Shown here: positions 1-11,564 of the stretch, one piece after another | How positions within the stretch are numbered: position 1 is the stretch's first letter | Layout of the letters: each line of letters starts with the position of its first letter | From: Geosiphon pyriformis uo1 | Lineage: Eukaryota > Fungi > Glomeromycota | Assembly (NCBI GenBank): GCA_016748015.1 | Contig: JAAOMT010000589.1 | Location: 7,783-19,346, forward strand | DNA length: 11,564 bases | Direction: 5' to 3' | Program-made: the position numbers and the translations under genes | The notes under the pieces: model-generated | Seen by the model: only the letters and a program-made list of their open reading frames with translations | The model's database searches: none | What the model was told of the DNA's origin: nothing

Positions 1-263
1 GGCTTAACACAAAATTTGAAACCAGATTTCTATTATGTTTATTTTTGTCTAGTTTGCAAAACAGCGAAGATTAAATTATGCCTTATTTCAGGTCTCAGCG
101 GAGATTTTATTCTTGTATTACAATACGCAAATGGAAGTACACTTCGAGACTATTTAAAGAATCATTTTGAATTGCTTGGCATTAGTAAAAAATTGAGCTA
201 GCCAAAAACATAGTCGACGCTATAGCATATTTACATGAAAACAAGATATTTCATAGGGATTTA
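1..263 (+). pseudogene. Protein kinase (tyrosine-kinase-like) fragment, subdomains IV-VIb, frameshifted and truncated
   Basis: Frame 1 gives GLTQ... then, after the acceptor ttatttcag (ends 91), LSGDFILVLQYANGSTLRDYLKNHF. A one-base shift in the A6 run (187-192) continues KIELAKNIVDAIAYLHENKIFHRDL (HRDL = 252-263), followed by donor-like GTGAGT (264-269). No intact DFG/APE exon downstream. The 5' end lies outside the window. Confidence 0.85.
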
Positions 264-646
264 GTGAGTTGCTTGAGAGATGTCATTGGTTTGTGTGCTC
301 ATCTCAAGCGTTTGTTTAAAAAAAAAAGGGATTCAAATTTCGTGTCACGAATATTAAAATGATTATAAGTTTGGACGGTGTATTTTCCAGCATCGATCCC
401 AAATGTTTTTTGTTGAAACAAATTTTTTTAACGAGTGAACAAAAATGAGTATTGTTGAAATTTGGCAATTATTTCAAGATACTTATTGCAAAATGTTATG
501 AATGATTTTTATTTTAGAAAATTTCCAACTTAGAATGTAAGTTAGCAACGTTCAGGATAAAAAAACTTGTATCCAAGAAAACATCTAATTCCTAGATTTG
601 CAAATTAATCATTCATCATTTTATCATGAATAAAGGAATCTTTAAA
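255..646 (+). repeat. Left arm of long inverted repeat, near-identical core (pairs with 11173-11564)
   Basis: Reverse complement of 11173-11564 matches base for base with 9 substitutions and no indels in 392 bp (manual count, ~97.7%). Confidence 0.97.
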
Positions 647-1400
647 GATTCCACACTATCCTTCATAATTGATTATTATTGTTCCATGAGTAAAAATTAT
701 TTGTTATTTTTTTAATATATAGAAATCATCCTGTGACACCTCATCAATATCTTATCTCACTTTATTTAATATTTGTGTAAGAAATTGTATTTTATAGAGA
801 AATAATAATTAAATTACAGGATTTTTTTTTTTTTTTTTGCAAATCATATTTATATAACTTCATTAATTCAATTTAATTTGGTTTCCTAGATTCAAAAATT
901 TTAATCTGAAGTTTTGAAAGAACTCAAAATATCGAATTGTTCCATAAGAAATTATTTCAACATTTCGATTTCGAATTAAATAGTATTTCCAAGACGAGTC
1001 CAATTTTTCTCAAATATATTGTTGGTTTACTTTCTTTTTTTCTTTTGCAATTTTTATTTTATCAATAAAAATTCTATTATCAAAGGGATAAATAATAACA
1101 ATGTGATTCAAAATAAAATAAAAGAGATTGTAGCATATTTAAAAATATTTTGCTCTTGGCGATAATAATTTTGTTTAAAAATCCTTTTCTTAGAAAATAA
1201 TCACGAGATTTGCATATGAGAACTAGGGTATTTGGTTGAATTATCAGATTCGTAATTGACCTGGTTTTTTTTTTAGGTGAATGACGATGAGGTAACACAA
1301 AGTAAGCATTATACATTTTATATTTTGCTTTTTTAATGATACACACAATTTTATCTCGAGCCAAAGTTAATTTATGTCTCTTTAATTTATTTAGATAATA
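647..1400 (+). repeat. Left arm of long inverted repeat, diverged inner part (pairs with ~10445-11172)
   Basis: Colinear blocks continue inward with indels. cactatccttcataattgattattattg (654) pairs with ~11124-11152. gtttcctagattcaaaaattttaatctgaa (881) pairs with ~10780-10810. gatttcgaattaa (967) pairs with 10719-10731. catatgagaactagggta (1213) pairs with ~10520-10537. The match is clear to ~1230 and weak to ~1400. Confidence 0.75.
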
Positions 1401-1831
1401 TATCATAAGGGTGACAAATTCATTTTATGAGTCTAGCTAAAGAAGATATGTGAGACTGAGAATTTGGTGAGTTTGGATTCTTTGAAATTCGATTAATCAC
1501 TTTAGATAGTAAAACTTCTAACAAATCACAATAAATGAATGAGGAAAAAGAAAAAAGTTATCTATTTGTGATAGGATAGTGATAATAAAAAACGGGGACA
1601 AAATTCTTACCTGTTCCATTAGGGTTTCTCATATTTAAATTATTCAAAAATCTTAAAGAGAAACAAGTGGTTCAATACATTGGTTCTTTTCTTTCTTTGG
1701 TTCCTTAGAAATTCTTTGCAATATGGTAGTCATTCACCACTGATAGAATATGAGATTTTTTTAAGAAGAAACTTAAATTTGAGCTTAATACACATGATTA
1801 AGATGAAATTTATTTATTATGAAACATTCAT

Positions 1832-3510
1832 TTATAAATTGAAATTATCCCATCCTTTATTAAATCTCTCTACATTCAATTGATTCAACCGCTTTACTAT
1901 ATCAAATAAGTTGCCCTTCCAGTAATAATCTACACGAACACGGAAAATGTATTTAAATTTAGAGTAGAAAAGATTAGAAAATTCTGTCAACACATCGTAG
2001 TTGACCTCAGAGGCAAAAGTATCAATGCAATTAGTTGTAGGTTTTTCCGTTTTTTTCATAGAATTTTCGACATCTGATTTCTGAGCAGCGATTCTAGAAA
2101 GAAAAGAAATAATTTGAAATTTTATTTCGGGTAAAAGTTTAAAACGTTTTCGAAATTAACAAAAAATCAACTTACGTGTCATCAAGAACTTGCCATCGTA
2201 CACGTCCAAATTTCTGTTTATCGTCTTTAATAAGATCTTGTGCTTTTTCACTCCATTGAATAAAAGCTTTACTGAGCTCGTGAAGAGTTCCGGCATTATA
2301 AGAATAAGTGAAAGATTCGATAAACCAGTCTTTACTGCTTTGGATCCAAGGTTTCAAGTTTGGTGTTTTTTTATATAAAGAATTTCCAAAAAAAATCACT
2401 ATTCTTTGATTCTCTTCAATCATCTCTCTTAATGTTGGCCATTTAAATTCTCTCCCGATTTTTGGCCAAACCATTGAGTGACCAGGATCAATTATAAAGA
2501 ATTGTTCCAATTTTGATTGGATATAGGTTCCTGACACGCTTATATCACCATCGGTATCTTTAAATTCGATTGTGACAATTTCATTAGGATTTGTCTCCAA
2601 AAAATCTCTGATTTGTTTGAAAACTGGATCTAACTCATCACCGAGTGCTCTATAAGGGGTCCGACCATGGCATAAAATAGCTTCATGTTTATCAACGAGA
2701 CAAGTATCAAGATCGAATAATCGAATTCCTAAAAATGTATTCAATGTGAATATACATGTATATAATTTTTTAGCTATATTAAAAAAGAAATGAATAACTT
2801 ACCATCATTCAATTGGGTGGCAATATTGTGGCCAAAATTATTGTTAAAAAGGCAGTTATGGGTCCAAGGGGCAGGAAAATTTCCGCATGCATTTTTGGAC
2901 ACATCACATACCGCTGAACTTAGCCTACATATTGCTTCATTATTATCACAAAATGCCCTATCAATTTTCGAACATCCAAATTGATGTATATTGCAGCCAA
3001 AATCTAAGAATTTCGGGATTTTTTGTTTACAGGCATCTATTTGGGCTTCACAACGAGCCTTTTGGGATGCTAAACATTTTTGTTTTTTTTTATCGCAATC
3101 ATTAGTAAACTCTTTACAATTTAATAAATTTTGTTTGCAGTCAAATTTGAGGTTGTATGCTGCGCTGTTGTGGCTCCCAGGATGTGTCTAAGATGGTAGT
3201 GGGGAAGTATTTTAGCATAAATCTTAAACATCCTTTTCTTACAAAAGGCTTTTTAATAGATGCCCGGGACCCCCAAGTTGAATAATTTCAACAATTTAAG
3301 ACTCACCACTTGGTCATATCTTAAATCACATAGATCTGCGTTGCCATTGCAAACCAATGTTGAATTGTTACTTTTTTCATTAACATTCTGTAGACCCATG
3401 TCCTTCGTTATTAAAGCTGATACGCCTCGTGAGAATATTAGTTGAAGAACGTAAGACAAAATCAATTGATTTAATTTTGACTTTATAAATTGGATGAGTA
3501 AATTTTTCAT
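1832..3510 (-). CDS. PI-PLC X-domain / PLC-like phosphodiesterase (TIM barrel), probably secreted; complement(join(1832..2093,2176..2728,2803..3187,3307..3510)), 467 aa
   Basis: Three GT-AG introns (donors GTGAGT, GTAAGT, GTAAGT) with matching phases 0, 1, 2. Spliced length 1404 nt, no internal stop. Family motifs: CNGNADLCDLRYDQVTHPGSHNS, QLNDGIRLFDLD, LCHG, FLETNPNEIVTIEF, WPTLREMIEENQRIVIF, VDYYWKG...VKRLN. Both catalytic His motifs (HNS, LCH) are present. The N-terminus is moderately hydrophobic and ends ...RGVSA (possible signal peptide). Confidence 0.92.
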
Positions 3511-4385
3511 TTCGTTGAAAAATTTTGGAATATCGTAAAATTTTTTGTTAGCTGTGATAAAGATACTTTTCTCGGAATTTTTGGCAAAATTTGTAGCTTT
3601 CAAATAATGCTGTAAACTTTCGTGATTTTAGCTGAGTAGTACTTTCATTACCAGAATTTTCAGGTTGAACCAAGCCTTTACAAATAATGACCGCTCTTGA
3701 AAAGCATAACCGGTTGAGTAATGTTTAGATCGCTAGGGGCTTTCTTTTTGGGAAAAATTTTACGCCCAATGAACTTGTCTAGATAGAGTAAAGGGGAATT
3801 AATTGAAATCTTTTTAAGTTCCAGTGAAAAAAAAAATTTGACTTTTAGAATTTTTTTCTCAGATAGTTTTTGCAAAAATTATCTAGTTGGTTGAATAATT
3901 ATTTTTATTCTTGTCACTATTACGGGTGATTTTTCTTTATAATATATTAAATTCTCTTGATTAAAACTTTTTGGATAAAAAATATTTCCATAATTCATTT
4001 GAATCTTTTAAATTCAATCAAGACATCAGGCTACCGACGCTTATCGTGGCTTTGAAATTTAAGCAAACTGGTTATGATTTCGAATTTTTTTGGAAAGTTA
4101 AATGAAGGTAGATCATTTTTTTTTTTCAGATGAAATTACCAAGTACAGTAGTTAAATAATCATGAAAATCGGATAAAAAGATTTTTTACTTTGGATCAAA
4201 CTTTTTCAATAAAGTTTTTATATAAATCTATAGTTTTTTTTCTAGAATAATTTATCAAAGAATAATAAAGTTATCTGAGAAAGGATATGAAAACATTTAA
4301 AATAGATGAAATTTTATTTTTAAAAGAATCAAATCTTAATCCTCATCCATTAGATAGAAAGAAGAATTTTAATTATTCAAATATA

Positions 4386-5739
4386 CAGGGGGGTATAAAA
4401 AGTATTCGACACTTAATATAATATATAAAAAAGGCTATATATTGTAATACCATTACCAATTTAAACCATAATTTTTTTTATAATTACTTATAGTTATAAT
4501 TTGCAAATCAACATAAATTGCGTCCTTGTAAAACACAACAGTGGATCATACGCGTATATATAAAATATCAAACATTCTTGTCGTGAAAAAATTTACCGCA
4601 TCAAATGTGTCTTGGAAAAGAACTTTCTGAATATCAAAAAGGAGGGATTATTTCAGCAATAAAGTTAGGACATACAAACAGTGAGATTTCCACGACTATT
4701 GGATGTTCACGTTCTTCTGTAATACGTGTATAGAAGTCATACGAGCTAAAAAAACTTCCTAAAAAACGAACGGGCTGACCACAAATTCTTGACAAACGCG
4801 CACGTGAACAACTCAAATATTCAATAATGGAGAATAAAGAAACCCGCCGCCAAACTCTTTCTCAAATACGATTAAATTTTATTAAAGATACCAACAAATC
4901 TATTTCTATACAAACTATTCGAAATGGATTAGCTCAAGAAGGACTTCGCTCGTGCATTCCTCATCTCAAGCCATTAATTTCCAAATCAAATAAAGAAAAA
5001 CATTTACAATGGGCTCGTACTTATGAAAATTGGACAGTAGAAGATTTTAAACGAGTTGTTTGGTCAGATGAATCTACATATACACAATTTAGAACTACAG
5101 GATTTGGACGTGTATGGCGTAAACCTTCCGAAGAGTTTCATAAGGATTGTATTGCAGCCACAGTTAGAAAAAGCTTTGGTCGCATGTTTTGGGGATGTTT
5201 TTCATGGGTTGGTTTGGGTCCTTTAGTTCCTTTGGTTGGTCATATTACTGGAGTTATACACCGCGAAACCTTGGCTAATTATGCAATTCCTGCGGTAAAA
5301 CTTCATGCAAAAAAAAACCAAAAAAAAGTTTTTTTTTCAGGAAGACAATGCACCAATCCACACATCAAAAGTCGCGAGTTCTTTTCTTACCTCTTCAAAT
5401 GTTGAATTACTTCCTTGGCCAGCACAAAGTCCTGATATTACTCCAATAAAAAATTTTTGGTCATATATTGAAGTTAAAATTCGTCAACGTAATTCACAAC
5501 CCTCAAATATTGTACAATTGAAACAGTGGGTTAAGGAAGAATGGGATGCGATACCTGTAAATTACTATCGTAATTTGATCAAGTCTACGCCACGTCGAGT
5601 TCAAGCTATTCTTGAAGTAAATGGGGGTCAAACAAAATACTAACATTTATTTTAATATAATAATAAAAAATTAACGATTCATAAGTTAATTCTTTTATAT
5701 AACATATTATAAAAGTGTCATATTTTTTATACCCCCCTG
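4386..5739 (+). mobile_element. Tc1/mariner (Tc1-type, DD34E) DNA transposon, full length 1354 bp, inactivated
   Basis: Left TIR CAGGGGGGTATAAAAAGTATTCGACACTT (4386-4414). Right TIR reverse complement CAGGGGGGTATAAAAAATATGACACTT (5713-5739). TA on both sides (4384-4385, 5740-5741). Transposase remnant inside. Confidence 0.96.
4605..5643 (+). pseudogene. Tc1-family transposase pseudogene
   Basis: ATG 4605 (MCLGKELSEYQKGGII..., HTH-like) is in frame with ORF 4827. Stops at 4731 (TAG) and 4776 (TGA, in the GRP motif). Motifs VWSDES, MFWGCFS, FQEDNAPIH, WPAQSPDITPIKNFW, NGGQTKY. Frameshift in the A/T homopolymers at ~5309-5337. The position 34 residues after the second D is K (5449-5451) instead of E. 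Confidence 0.95.
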
Positions 5740-6710
5740 TATGTATATATTGATTTCCCATTGGTGTAAAAAGTGAATGTATTTTTTAAAGATTTAAAAA
5801 GGTTGGAATTGAAACTAAACCTATATTAAATATTTTTTCTAAAATTATAAAGGAATTAGCTTTTAAAAAAATAAATTTACCCGGTAGAAAAGACTCATTA
5901 TTAATCATTGAACAACAAAATCTTTGTACATGTATAAAATGATTGACAAAAAACTTTTCAATTTTTAATACATATATTAAAAAGGGAGTTATACATTGTA
6001 CTTTCGATCTTCATAAAAGAAATTTTTGCCAAAAATTTAACATATAGTCTATAAATAAATTTGATCCTGAGATGCAGTCTGCAATTCTTGTACATTTTAC
6101 ATGTATTTTATAAGTCATTGGACTAAAATTCCCCTTAATATTCAATTACAAGGATTAGTTTTTTTATAACCATTCAAGAATCTTATAAATTTGTGTAATA
6201 CCTAAATGTACCAATACGATACAACCAATTTCGAAAATAATAATTAACGGATAAATATTTTGCAATATTCTCAAACTATAAAAATTTAGTTAATTTTCAA
6301 AAAATTAGGTGATAAGCTTTATGTTCACAATAAGTCATAACTTGAAAATTCAAGAAAACTTAAAGTGTAATGAATAATTTTAATAAAATTAAAATTTCCA
6401 TTCAAGAATGATACATTTTCTATTCAAAACCTGCAATATTTCTCAATGGTCTTAAATGTAAACCTGCACAAATATTTGAATGTATATAGTTACAATGTAT
6501 ATAATCTGGTGAAACTTTTATTTTGAACACGATGGATAATTTCGGCACAAAATGATTAAATACTCTACGTAACAACCGAATTTCTGGTTCAAATAATTAA
6601 ATCTTTTTTAGGAATATCATCAGAAAAATAGAAGCGTACTGCATGCATTAAATATCATAATTAAAGGTTCCTGCATTTTGAAGTTACTGATAAATTTGAT
6701 ATATATTAAT

Positions 6711-6718
6711 TATAAAAA
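6711..6718 (+). promoter_or_regulatory. Candidate TATA box for the 7TM gene
   Basis: TATAAAAA 127 bp upstream of ATG 6838. Weak evidence in such AT-rich DNA. Confidence 0.25.
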
Positions 6719-6837
6719 GGGTTAAAAAGTATTGGAATTTATTATTCAAAGATTAAAATTGAATTTTTTTTTAAAATTATATTCTTCTACACTCCTTAAA
6801 ATCCTTACATGTAGATTCAAAATTATAAAGATTCTAA

Positions 6838-7764
6838 ATGTCTATCGCTTTTATTCTGGTCGTTATCGGTGCCATAGTAGCGATTGGGTGCACATCGATT
6901 ATTGGGTACAAATGTTTGGCCAACTTATCTAGACTAAGGGTAGCATGGTAGGGTTCTAAAGATTATTTTTCGCTTTACAATTATCATGTTTAATTAATCA
7001 TTTCCTTTTTCTTTTTTTTTTAATCAAGTTTCATAGCCAATTTTTTTGTCTGTATCTCGGCTATTTTTCGGCTCTTTCCATTTTACCATATCAAACTTTC
7101 ACCAAAAGTATATTGGTTAACAAATAGTATAACAGACACAGTTCACGATACAATTTTAATCGGTGCCGTTCTTGATATGGGTCGAAAATTTTATTTTAAA
7201 GAACAATGGAACACTCTTTTCTTTAAAATTATAATTTTTTTAACAATTCTTTTCGATTTTTTCAAGATAATTCCTACAATATTATTAATTTTAAACGTAT
7301 ATCCTTACCCTCTTGTTTCAATATACGTAGCACAAAATACTTTTGACGCAATTGTAACTATTTTAGCTTTTATCTATACATTTCGTCCAATCATAAGCGT
7401 ACATATAATTTCATTGTCTAAAGCTAAAAATACAAAGTTTATAGATCCCAGAAGAGCGGCAATTGCTACTTGGTACATGGGAACGCTTGTCCTAATTTTT
7501 ACCATTTATTTAGTTGTTTATGTATTATTTCTTCTACTAGCTGATCGAACAAATCATTTCACAGAGTTAAACGCTTTCGATAGTATACTTCGAATTTCTA
7601 CTACAATTATTATAGCTTTACCACCACCAAAAAGAGTTTTACGACTCCTTAAATCAATAATTATTGATCGTAGACCAATGAATTGGGCTATTCATTCAAG
7701 AGGGGTACTAAGTTCAGGAATTATTCATTGCGACCATTTTGCTGGTCAAGAATATGAATGTTAA
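6838..7764 (+). CDS. Integral membrane protein with about 7 TM helices (GPCR-like topology); join(6838..6947,7029..7764), 281 aa
   Basis: Exon 1 encodes MSIAFILVVIGAIVAIGCTSIIGYKCLANLSRLRVA. Donor GTAGGG at 6948, pyrimidine-rich 81-nt intron, acceptor AAG ending 7028, phase 2. The open frame runs into ORF 7177..7764. Seven hydrophobic segments by eye. Confidence 0.8.
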
Positions 7765-9381
7765 TAATAGAAAAAAATGTTTAGATACCCAATAATTTTT
7801 TTCATACAAATTTTTATATTCAATTCACATAAATTTTACTTTTCAATAGTTTTTTTCTTTTTGTAAAAATATATTACTGGTTATCTAAATTAGAAAAAAA
7901 AATTCTTTGAATATATAACATAATATATAATTAATAAAAAATAAGATTTTTTTTTTACTACACTATTTCATTTTTCTCAATTTATAAAGATTTACCTATA
8001 GAATTATAAACATAAATTTCACTTTTTTCCCTTTTTTTTTATTTCGAATTTTTAATATAAAATTCTTGATAAAAATATATTTTGTGAAAATAATTTTCAG
8101 AGTTTTTTTTTTTTATTGTGGGATAAATCAAATAAACACACACAATATGCATTTCATTAATTATTTTACCATATACGAAAAACGTTTTCAATATAATCGA
8201 TCTTGAAAAAATTATCTTTAAAACTTCATTCGCTTCTTTTCTCATATTTCCAAATAAGAGCTAGTCACAAAGTAAACAACTTCATAATGAGTTTAGAGCG
8301 TTCTATTTAATAAAAAAATGTTCTAAAGGAGTATTCCGTACAATTTGATTCATAAAACTTTTATTGAATATTTTTAGAGTAAATTTTGAAAATTCATTAT
8401 ATACTTTACGCTCGTGACATTTATTGAAACTAATTCACATTTCAATAAACTCAGAACCTTATTATTCTGTTTAATCATGATAGGTTACTATTGTGATCTG
8501 TACCAATGGTGTGACATGTATTTAGTAAGCGAAAACCAGTGAAATGGTTTTTTATAGAGCCCGTTTTCTTGTACGAGTTAAAAAATTTAGTAGATCAAAT
8601 CAGAAATGATTTAAAGCAAGTGGATTAAATTTTTTTTGCCAAGAATTTTATCGTTGCATATTCTGTGAGTAGATCAACCCATTTATGTTACTTTTGGTCA
8701 AAACTGTTGACACGGATAGAAAAGTAGCCAATTATCAATAATATTATCCCACTTTGTAGGTCTATATTATGAAACTTTTTTTTGCAACGTAGATCAGGGA
8801 AATTTGAGTTGATTGAATCAACGATAGATTTTATTTTGTGTTTCTTTATCATTAGGCTTAAATCTTTTGCAGCAAACGAAGAAACAATATTAAAATTAAA
8901 GAAATGTAATCAGAAATTTATGATAAAAGTTAATTTGATTTCAGAAATATAAGAATTATGGTCTTTTTAACAACGAACTTCACAGAAGTGATAAATAATT
9001 TTTGTTGGCTCAGTTGATTGAATTTTACAAAAATGTGGGTGAAATTGGGTTCACCTTTTAGTATGATTCTAAAAATAGCAGAAAAATCTTTTACATGATT
9101 TTTAATTTGGATAATTTATAAAATTATCAACTTTTGAAAAAAGTTTTATAACCCATTTTTGATTAAAATTAGTTCGTTGAAAATTGTGAGATGAGAGACT
9201 TTTTGCTTTTTAACCCAACAAATCTGCTCTCAGTGCGGAAAAACTTAGTTGTACCAAACTTATTATTGAGACTTCTAATTAATATTTGAGAAACATTAAA
9301 AATTTCCTTTTTTAAATTGGCATTAATATGGCGTAAAACAATTTTTTTAACGTGGGAAAGGTTGGTCGAGAAAAAAAAGAA

Positions 9382-9407
9382 ATGATGATGATGATGATGA
9401 TGATGAT
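9382..9407. repeat. (ATG)8 microsatellite
   Basis: Eight perfect ATG units plus AT. Confidence 0.95.
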
Positions 9408-10444
9408 CACTTTAATTTCTCAGCTTTTAGAGTTAACCGGCAAAAACAGAGTTTGTACATCTTTGATTAAGCATATTGAAATAGAGTATTACTCTTTTTA
9501 GGTGATTTGTCAATTTACCCATTGTTACCCTTGGAGATATTCATTTAAGGAGTTTATGGCTTTAAAATCAATAGCTCCGCTTTTTCACAAATTAATTTTA
9601 CCCTCCCAACCAACATATTGACTTTTCTCAAAGAAATACACAATAGTTCAAAAATCCACTTCAGAGTTTCATAAAAAGTTTGGTATACATTATAGTAACT
9701 CAAAGGCCGGCAGATGGTTAAATTGTTTACTTTGTCTGTTTGTTTGTTTTAATTATTTATTTATTTATTTAATTTTCTGTTTTTTTATTTTATTCACCCT
9801 ATCAACAAACAAGGGGGTAAATTCATTAAAATTTTAAATTTAAAACAATCTTATTTGAAGAATTTTTCAAATGAAAAATTTTATATTGTTTATTGTCAGT
9901 TTAGTTAAACTATGAAGAAATCCTGCACTTTAAGAAGGTATTAATTCTTGGCACATGAAAATTTTTAATTAATGATATGAATGGCGATCTATAATATTTC
10001 TTTATAAATTTCAATACATACAATAAATGTTATTTACAATTAAAACCTAACTGATTGAAAAGTTTTTATATTTAATGCATTTTTCTGGATAAAAATAACT
10101 TTAAAAAGGTTTGATTGTATTAAAAATTATTGGTTCTAACTTTAATGAATAGCTACATTTTATTTGTTGTGATAAATAAACATAACTTAAAACTTTAGCT
10201 TTAAATAATGCGTTATTTTGCTTATTCTTTGATTAATACAAAAATAATGTTTAAAAATTACATGAAATTGATATTGTAAACCCTATATATCAAAAGAATT
10301 CATATGGTAACATAAAAAACTAGTAATTTTTAAAATTCAAAACTTTTATATTTATATCTAAGTTTAATAGCTACAATTTTTTGAATACAATATTTAATTT
10401 TTACAAATAAAGTAAACAAGTTATTTTTCTAGTAATCTAAAAAC

Positions 10445-11172
10445 ATTCTATCTAAATTATTTAATAGAGAAATTTGAAATTTTTATAATTCAACTAACAG
10501 AATAACTCGTGAGATTAATTACCCTAATTCCCATATTGAAATCCCGTAATTCTTTTGCAAAAAGTAAAGATTTTTTAACCAAAAATTATAAAAATTTCTA
10601 TCCCATTACTATTCCTTTGAGAATAAAATTTTTATGGATAAATTAAAATTGAAAAAAATAAAAAAGAAATTAAAAAAACAAATTTGTTTGTGGAAATTAA
10701 AGCTTCTTGGAAATGGCATTAATTCGAAATCAAAATTTCTAAAAAATTTATTCTGAGCTAATTTGAAATTTTTCGAAATTTCAGATTAAAATTTTTGGAA
10801 TTTAGGAAACCGAAACAAATTTATATAAAATTTACAAAAAAACTAAAAAAAAATTGAATTTCTCCCGTTTAAAATATGTAATTTCATGTTCAGGTTAAAT
10901 ATCTTGCTAGATTGCGGAGGAGAAAACCATTCAAAGGCATTAGTTTTAAAATGAAAATGTTATTTGATATATTCAGTAGGGATTTTCCTGTCATTTAAAT
11001 ATTATTATTATCACTTGAAATATAGTTTATTATCCAAATGTTAAATGAAATATGGTATGATATTAATGCATGTTAGAGGAGAATTTATATATGAAAAGAT
11101 AACAAAAAATATTTCCTCATAGGACAATAATAATCAGTTATGAAGGATAGTGAGCTTTTTTGAGGAATATTT
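10445..11172 (-). repeat. Right arm of long inverted repeat, diverged inner part
   Basis: Colinear reverse-complement similarity to ~647-1400 with indels. The inner boundary is approximate and is clear from ~10520. Confidence 0.75.
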
Positions 11173-11564
11173 TTTAAAGATTCCTTTATTCATGATAAAA
11201 TGATGAATGATTAATTTGCAAATCTAGGAATTAGATGTTTTCTTGGATACAAATTTTTTTATCCTGAACGTTGCTAGCTTACATTTTAAGTTAGAAAATT
11301 CCTAAAATAAAAATCATTCATAACATTTTGCAATAAGTATCTTGAAATAATTGCCAAATTTCAACAATACTCATTTTTGTTCACTCGTTAAAAAAATTTG
11401 TTTCAACAAAAAACATTTGGGATCGATGCTGGAAAATACACCCTCCAAACCTATAATCATTTTAATATTCGTGACACGAAATTTGAATACCTTTTTTTTT
11501 TAAACAAACGCTTGAGATGAGCACACAAACCAATGACATCTCTCAAGCAACTCACTAAATCCCT
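11173..11564 (-). repeat. Right arm of long inverted repeat, near-identical core (runs to the window end)
   Basis: Reverse complement of 255-646 with 9 substitutions. The match continues to the last base of the window, so the outer boundary is unknown. Confidence 0.97.

Follow-up and report, generated by a model that had tools for sequence, protein, structure and literature searches.

A stretch of 11,564 nucleotides from the genome of Geosiphon pyriformis (positions 7,783 to 19,346 of contig JAAOMT010000589.1 in the 128 Mb assembly GCA_016748015.1; hereafter the window, whose positions 1-11,564 serve as coordinates throughout) carries a minus-strand gene of four exons, the second of which encodes a regular ladder of cysteines set into an enzyme resembling PI-PLC (the phospholipase C with specificity for phosphatidylinositol). 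We read the product as a secreted PI-PLC-like enzyme bearing a six-rung, disulfide-laddered arm for interfacial or partner binding, and consider this reading, taken as a whole, to have a somewhat better than even chance of being correct. Residue numbers are those of the public protein P0023 ('hypothetical protein G9A89_003431 [Geosiphon pyriformis]', 430 residues), which is identical to exons 1-4 from the second Met (Met38) onward and includes all of exon 2. Searches were run with the exons separately, and full-length analyses used P0023.

The twelve cysteines of the ladder lie in the interval 3139..2885 (minus strand, as for all features of the gene), from C1 (codon 3139-3137) to C12 (codon 2887-2885), a span of 85 codons with gaps of 6,6,6,7,6,11,6,7,6,6,6. 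The first six (arm 1; 3029..3139, residues 48-84, gaps 6,6,6,7,6) span 36 residues that are mostly polar, and the last six (arm 2; 2885..2995, residues 96-132, gaps 6,7,6,6,6) follow a tip (2996..3028) that reads KQKIPKFLDFG, with Pro89 followed by aromatic and Leu residues. The initial annotation had the coordinates and spacing exactly right from C1 to C12, and its count of twelve cysteines falls short by one, as a thirteenth (C13, residue 143; 2852..2854) stands 10 residues beyond C12. When 12 cysteines were placed randomly in 85 residues, at least 10 of the 11 gaps measured 6-7 in 0 of 200,000 trials, which places the heptad periodicity far outside chance expectation. That the gaps mirror one another is weak evidence by comparison, because 5 of the 45 arrangements of eight 6s and two 7s are palindromic.

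The protein into which the ladder is set is recognizable from several directions. With exon 3 alone, Pfam returned PF00388 (PI-PLC-X) at an E-value of 0.025, below the Pfam threshold, and a PDB sequence search returned 1t6m at E 0.014; a 41-row family profile matched the Listeria, S. aureus and Bacillus PI-PLCs in the PDB at ~E 3e-9. The top 24 Foldseek matches of an AlphaFold2 (AF2) model of P0023 were all bacterial PI-PLCs (E 1e-7 to 2e-5, probability 1.0), with template modelling (TM) scores by target of ~0.5, and ESM Atlas clusters carrying PI-PLC_X (PF26146) and PI-PLC_cat (PF26178) matched at 0.74-0.81 by target. These results bear out the PI-PLC identity first proposed from the sequence: by homology and model, the host is a single-domain TIM barrel of the bacterial PI-PLC/PLCXD kind, which would be expected to cleave phosphatidylinositol or glycosylphosphatidylinositol. 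P0023 has precomputed Pfam records for PF26146, PF26178 and PF00388. The first two are also recorded on relatives without the insert (e.g. P0028, P0029); they therefore describe the barrel, and were ruled out as names for the insert.

The active site retains its catalytic residues. In the filled rows of the alignment H37 (codon 3172-3170) and N38 (codon 3169-3167) are each present in 38 of 38 and H180 (codon 2669-2667), the second catalytic His, in 40 of 40, with R162 and H180 essentially invariant; profile alignment and motif order identify H37 and H180 as the equivalents of Bacillus His32 and His82. D165, D167 and E214 are present in P0023, and C179 and C366 are both Cys in 28 rows. The bacterial enzymes (PDB 1ptd, 7ptd, 3v18, 1aod) and PLCXD have the same single-domain barrel, and the Geosiphon protein shares with them the GIR motif and the two catalytic His residues. 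They differ in that the first His is followed by Asn here versus Asp in bacteria, and that the position of bacterial Arg69 is Asp167, which in a hidden Markov model alignment stands opposite the Arg of GIRYIDIR in Listeria PI-PLC. N38, D165, D167 and E214 may be the equivalents of N312, E341, D343 and E390 of PLC-delta1. The His-Asn pair and the Asp/Asp/Glu set resemble the site of the calcium-dependent eukaryotic enzymes, and the Geosiphon protein may likewise depend on calcium.

A further difference from the bacterial enzymes is in the segment that holds helix B, ~15-20 residues long in bacteria, whereas here it is a Cys-rich module of 100 residues. Profile alignment to Bacillus PI-PLC resumes at ~residue 46 of the bacterial protein, just after C13, and the first catalytic His matches His32, so that the module falls where BtPI-PLC forms helix B. 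It enters the barrel after the first catalytic His and before the second strand, on the side of the active site, as the initial annotation had suggested. The part of BtPI-PLC that anchors most deeply in the membrane is helix B (I43, K44; PMC4816757), and one of our structure matches, PDB 2or2, is the W47A/W242A interfacial mutant. The position supports the view that an interfacial element may have been elaborated into an arm. We propose that the short, membrane-inserting helix B has been replaced by an 85-residue module of two antiparallel helices of ~40 residues, each with a face along which six heptad-spaced cysteines are lined up; that six inter-helix disulfides would stand in for a hydrophobic core; and that a seventh, C13-Cys169, would fasten the base to the barrel. 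This would give a rigid, unfolding-resistant arm ~55-60 Å long, projecting from the active-site side of the barrel with a Pro-aromatic tip, and serving the enzyme in interfacial or partner binding, be it to a membrane or a cell surface. The disulfide bonds, calcium dependence, secretion, arm orientation and binding role are the parts of this scheme that we infer.

The helical hairpin itself, suggested in the initial annotation, is predicted by both AF2 runs. A single-sequence prediction for exon 2 gave two long helices at a predicted local distance difference test (pLDDT) score of 53, and the prediction for P0023 with the 41-row alignment reached a mean pLDDT of 89.2 and a predicted TM score of 0.85, with helices at residues 48-87 and 90-133 and pLDDT of 74-94 over the blocks of the insert. 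The 36 residues from C1 to C6 correspond to 10 helical turns at 100 degrees per residue, which puts the six cysteines of an arm within ~60 degrees of one face. That the insert forms a two-helix hairpin is thus well supported by modelling.

A word-index search with exon 2, in which candidates are restricted to 70-224 residues, came back empty. An exhaustive HMMER search was made against 1.84 billion representatives, giving 13 matches at E < 1e-3, and was extended by cluster look-ups and further searches, including one by profile. Two of the 13 (P0009, P0010) were discarded as spurious, having no heptad-spaced Cys run (P0009 has a single Cys). The long ladder was found in Glomeromycota (Ambispora, Entrophospora, Funneliformis, Gigaspora, Cetraspora, Diversispora), in Mortierellomycota (Podila, Gamsiella, Entomortierella, Actinomortierella, Mortierella), in Zoopagomycota (Syncephalis, Thamnocephalis) and in one amoebozoan transcriptome (Paradermamoeba). 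From Glomeromycota to Zoopagomycota all 12+1 cysteines are kept at 23-48% identity. The canonical spacing of the family is 6,6,6,7,6,11,6,6,6,6,6, followed by 10 to C13. The perfect palindrome described at first does hold for the gaps in Geosiphon, but most orthologs have 6 at C8-C9, and the second 7 that completes the symmetry is limited to Geosiphon and Ambispora, both Archaeosporales; the exact palindrome is, on this comparison, an incidental detail of that lineage and no defining feature of the module. The amoebozoan sequence (P0006, Paradermamoeba levis, from EukProt) groups with Zoopagomycota in a clade with 98% support by the Shimodaira-Hasegawa-like approximate likelihood ratio test (SH-aLRT), on a very long branch; its source may be a zoopagalean parasite living in the culture, or it may reflect gene transfer.

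Shorter relatives share the barrel, the insertion point, the outer rungs and the tether. Spizellomycetales chytrids have five cysteines with gaps of 6,6,6,10 (a 2+2 mini-hairpin plus C13), and short paralogs of Geosiphon (G9A89_001044, P0026) and Ambispora (908_t) have gaps of 6,9-10,6,10-11. These forms have 2+2 Cys and a loop of 6-10 residues, while the long form has four more rungs per arm. The Geosiphon paralog (contig C348:282032-285580) is intact, with the same exon structure and gaps of 6,9,6,10; as Ambispora has the same long/short pair, the duplication predates the Geosiphon-Ambispora split. Relatives in bacteria, Dikarya and Smittium have 16-20 residues and zero Cys at this place, in keeping with the earlier remark that the segment is normally short. 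In a tree built without the insert columns, all hairpin-bearing proteins lay together to one side of a branch supported at 99% by SH-aLRT; the tree did not resolve the order in which long and short hairpins arose. The Geosiphon assembly also holds a 5'-truncated pseudogene copy of the gene (contig C592, ~129233-129929), similar to it from arm 2 near C10 through exons 3-4, with several deletions and in-frame stops and with two of the three covered ladder Cys codons changed.

The nested pairing proposed in the initial annotation (C1-C12, C2-C11, C3-C10, C4-C9, C5-C8, C6-C7) is favoured by several comparative patterns. Each pair sums to residue 180 in P0023, and in the 17 long forms the arms measure 36-38 and 36-37 residues, with a difference of 0-2. 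Because Cys i and i+7 are too distant to bond within one helix, their partners must be on the other helix. In two Diversispora species C6 and C7 are both replaced with the length unchanged (25 = 6+1+11+1+6), and the short forms retain C1, C2, C11, C12 and C13 only, i.e. the two outermost rungs and the tether Cys. The sole unbalanced member was the Podila humilis model P0035 with 2+4 Cys, from which 44 ladder residues had been removed as an intron; in the DNA (JAAAIR010000567.1, L007:1177-1560) the frame is open across this 'intron' and all 13 Cys are encoded, so the 2+4 form is an annotation error. C13 and Cys169 (in DLDTC; codon 2702-2700) occur together in 30 rows and are jointly missing from 9 insert-less rows, with no complete row having one alone (2 rows are gapped at 169), a co-occurrence that points to a seventh disulfide from base to barrel. 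From these patterns the nested pairing is likely, and C13 probably tethers the hairpin base to Cys169.

The residues between the rungs are also patterned. Family-wide, 88% of arm 2 heptads have V/I/A directly before the Cys (C+6) and about half have W/F at C+3, and arm 1 consists mainly of T/S/Q/K; the interface would therefore be made up largely of cystines and one apolar stripe from arm 2. The tip Pro (Pro89) is invariant in 14 of 14 aligned long forms (consensus P-x-W-L-H-W-x) and is followed by W/F-L-x-W/F-L in most members, the Geosiphon sequence being KIPKFLDF. Of the hydrophobic and basic tip noted from this sequence alone, the Pro and the aromatic/Leu residues are thus conserved, but the basic character (of the tip and arm 1) is confined to Geosiphon: the net charge of arms and tip ranges from -5 to +3 among orthologs, and the idea that basicity of the arm or tip is conserved was rejected.

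A number of observations weigh against the arm as we read it. The AF2 model was read as secondary structure, and support for the disulfides comes from comparative patterns; the arms of most orthologs differ by 1-2 residues; and the helix break, at residues 88-89, is slightly off the symmetry centre at residue 90. Arm 1 is polar and without a classical heptad hydrophobic stripe, and the Geosiphon copy has kept the apolar residues at C-1 and lost the conserved aromatic stripe of arm 2, so that its arm may be working differently or under relaxed constraint. No RNA runs are listed for Geosiphon pyriformis. Finally, insertion of the tip end-on would put the active site ~55 Å from the membrane, and a view of the arm as simply a longer helix B thus needs it to lie flat on the surface or to bind some other partner.

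Among the alternatives, the strongest accepts the hairpin and holds that its cysteines are otherwise paired, intermolecular, or reduced and binding metal between the helices. The AF2 output, being secondary structure with no S-S geometry, leaves room for it, as do the unequal arms of most orthologs, and soft metals might in principle be held between two opposed rows of Cys, as in designed Cys coiled coils. We nevertheless regard it as unlikely, since it has to contend with the geometry that directs Cys i and i+7 to the other helix, with the joint loss of C6 and C7 in Diversispora and the outer pairs kept in the short forms, with Cys counts that are balanced in every verified member, and with ortholog signal peptides that indicate folding in an oxidising compartment.

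We also considered that the Geosiphon long form might be a decaying or drifting paralog that keeps its ladder by structural inertia, with G9A89_001044 doing the ordinary enzyme work. The loss of the conserved arm 2 Trp/Phe at C+3 and of the FWEN motif would fit such decay, as would its rather long branch (0.65) in the tree, where it lacks any supported partner, the 5'-truncated copy on contig C592 and the broken Tc1/mariner element that the gene adjoins. Decay would be hard to reconcile, however, with an intact frame, three intact GT..AG introns and 13+5 intact Cys, or with the retention of H37, N38, R162, D165, D167 and H180, and we think this explanation quite improbable. Least credible of all is that the ladder is spliced out of the mature protein and this part of exon 2 is a gene-model artefact: although no RNA run is listed for Geosiphon and the Podila humilis model does remove 44 ladder residues, that 'intron' is an annotation error in an open frame encoding every Cys, the ladder is retained in over 20 independent models, the Paradermamoeba protein P0006 is a Trinity open reading frame that comes from transcript assembly, and 13 Cys conserved at 23-48% identity would be unexpected of an intron.

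The four exons of the gene total 467 codons and are separated by three canonical GT..AG introns in AT-rich window DNA (~23-36% G+C); the codon total, the splice sites and the GSHNS and QLNDGIR flanks of the insert, all given in the initial annotation, were confirmed. P0023 matches the exon joins, and the splice model therefore has independent annotation. Exon 1 (3307..3510; 68 codons) opens with the ATG at 3510 and encodes a signal-peptide-like hydrophobic stretch followed by CNGNADLCDLRYDQV. It is joined across intron 1 (3188..3306; gtgagt...ttag), at a junction YDQV|THPG identical in P0023, to exon 2 (2803..3187), which is stop-free from THPGSHNS to QLND and encodes the first catalytic His-Asn and the ladder. 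This exon had been reported as missed in the list of open reading frames; it is indeed an internal exon without a start codon, but the public model contains it. Intron 2 (2729..2802; gtaagt...ttag) is in phase 1, giving QLND-G-IRLF as in P0023, and exon 3 (2176..2728) encodes the core of the barrel, with GIR162, D165, D167, Cys169, Cys179-His180 and TIE214F. Intron 3 (2094..2175; gtaagt...ctag; phase 2; junction LDDT|IAAQ as in P0023) leads to exon 4 (1832..2093), whose coding part (2093..1835) ends in a stop at 1834-1832 and supplies the C-terminal part of the barrel, including Cys366. The public model begins at the second Met (3399) and so leaves the signal peptide out of P0023. A start at the in-frame ATG of position 3510 lengthens the protein by 37 residues, among them the hydrophobic core LILSYVLQLIF (hydrophobicity up to 2.1), and because the orthologs carry classical signal peptides at the N-terminus, translation likely starts at 3510 rather than 3399. 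On these features the gene appears intact and would encode a secreted PI-PLC-like phosphodiesterase.

Known disulfide-stapled hairpins are the nearest analogues in mechanism of the module as proposed, and the module is outside their families. Plant alpha-hairpinins (CX3C-Xn-CX3C) and CS-alpha/alpha toxins are secreted helical hairpins with nested disulfides; they are, however, independent peptides of ~30-40 residues with two disulfides and CX3C motifs, and membership in the alpha-hairpinins was rejected on the spacing of 6-7 and the position of the module inside a 467-residue enzyme. The CHCH proteins (twin CX9C; Cox17, Mia40/CHCHD4) and small Tim proteins (twin CX3C) share the antiparallel helix-turn-helix that is predicted here and have periodic inter-helix disulfides; their two disulfides at spacing 9 or 3 contrast with the six proposed here at spacing 6, and they are free-standing proteins of the mitochondrial intermembrane space rather than an insert in a predicted secreted enzyme. 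CHCH membership was rejected because the spacing is CX6C, with one or two instances of CX7C, because each helix has six Cys and because Pfam gave no CHCH match; the CHCHD4 motif is described in PMC12114033. Searches of Pfam and the PDB found no sequence similarity between the insert and the CHCH, small Tim or alpha-hairpinin groups. Searches of the literature for CX6C disulfide hairpins found retroviral Env CX6CC, ginsentides and CHCHD4, and no description of the module.

In Pfam, with each exon and with the insert of 14 members, no family covered the insert; Paramecium_SA, Ragweed_pollen and PLA2_inh appeared below threshold in 1-2 members each and were set aside as composition matches. By sequence and by insert profile the PDB held no match to the insert, ropporin and mS35 being rejected at E 0.15 or worse, and an ESM Atlas search by features gave no usable match. 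VIA-align, run with a low-confidence exon-2 model, returned phasin, prefoldin, EsxAB and designed bundles at Z ~10, which is short of the bar that the tool sets for helical folds; these were rejected as generic, none being disulfide-laddered. A Rhizophagus clarus 'PLC-like phosphodiesterase' effector candidate proved to be an unrelated GDPD protein. The suspicion that the insert belongs to no named domain has therefore held for Pfam and the PDB, but the suggestion of a possibly undescribed module needs amending, for it is old and conserved in a fungal clade and not specific to this gene: judged by its sequence relatives, the module is unnamed, old and widespread in early-diverging fungi. We regard the protein as a PI-PLC-like enzyme combined with a disulfide-stapled hairpin rather than as something categorically new.

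More tentatively, and at what we would put as rather less than an even chance, the insert may represent an undescribed 'cystine-zipper' class of alpha-hairpin, in which the place of the hydrophobic core is taken by as many as six heptad-spaced disulfides between the helices, rungs are gained and lost in pairs, and a single origin in early fungi from PI-PLC helix B has given a rigid ~55-60 Å arm that sets the site or surface of enzyme action. The rungs form a series, with 2+2 in chytrids, 5+5 in Diversispora and 6+6 elsewhere, and the six-rung ladder, if real, is to our knowledge the longest regular disulfide-stapled helical hairpin. It would then be a natural helical pair with a cystine core in place of hydrophobic side chains, of interest to protein designers as a rigid, polar-faced scaffold of tunable length. 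It is also a conserved and unannotated feature of predicted secreted lipid-phosphodiesterases from arbuscular-mycorrhizal fungi, Mortierella-like soil fungi and zoopagalean parasites, and in each of these three groups interactions with partners at surfaces and membranes are of central biological importance. As the module replaces the bacterial membrane anchor, it gives a direct point of entry for asking what these enzymes bind. No long-standing open question is touched, and public databases had listed the proteins before, under the names 'hypothetical' or 'PLC-like phosphodiesterase'.

Elsewhere in the window, 1.3 kb upstream of the gene start, lies the remnant of a Tc1/mariner-type transposase (4827-5643, plus strand) in two overlapping frames, with HTH_Tnp_Tc3_2 at 4827-5405 (E 5e-13) and DDE_3 at 5305-5643 (E 9e-9). 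The two domains being in different frames, the remnant has at least one frameshift.

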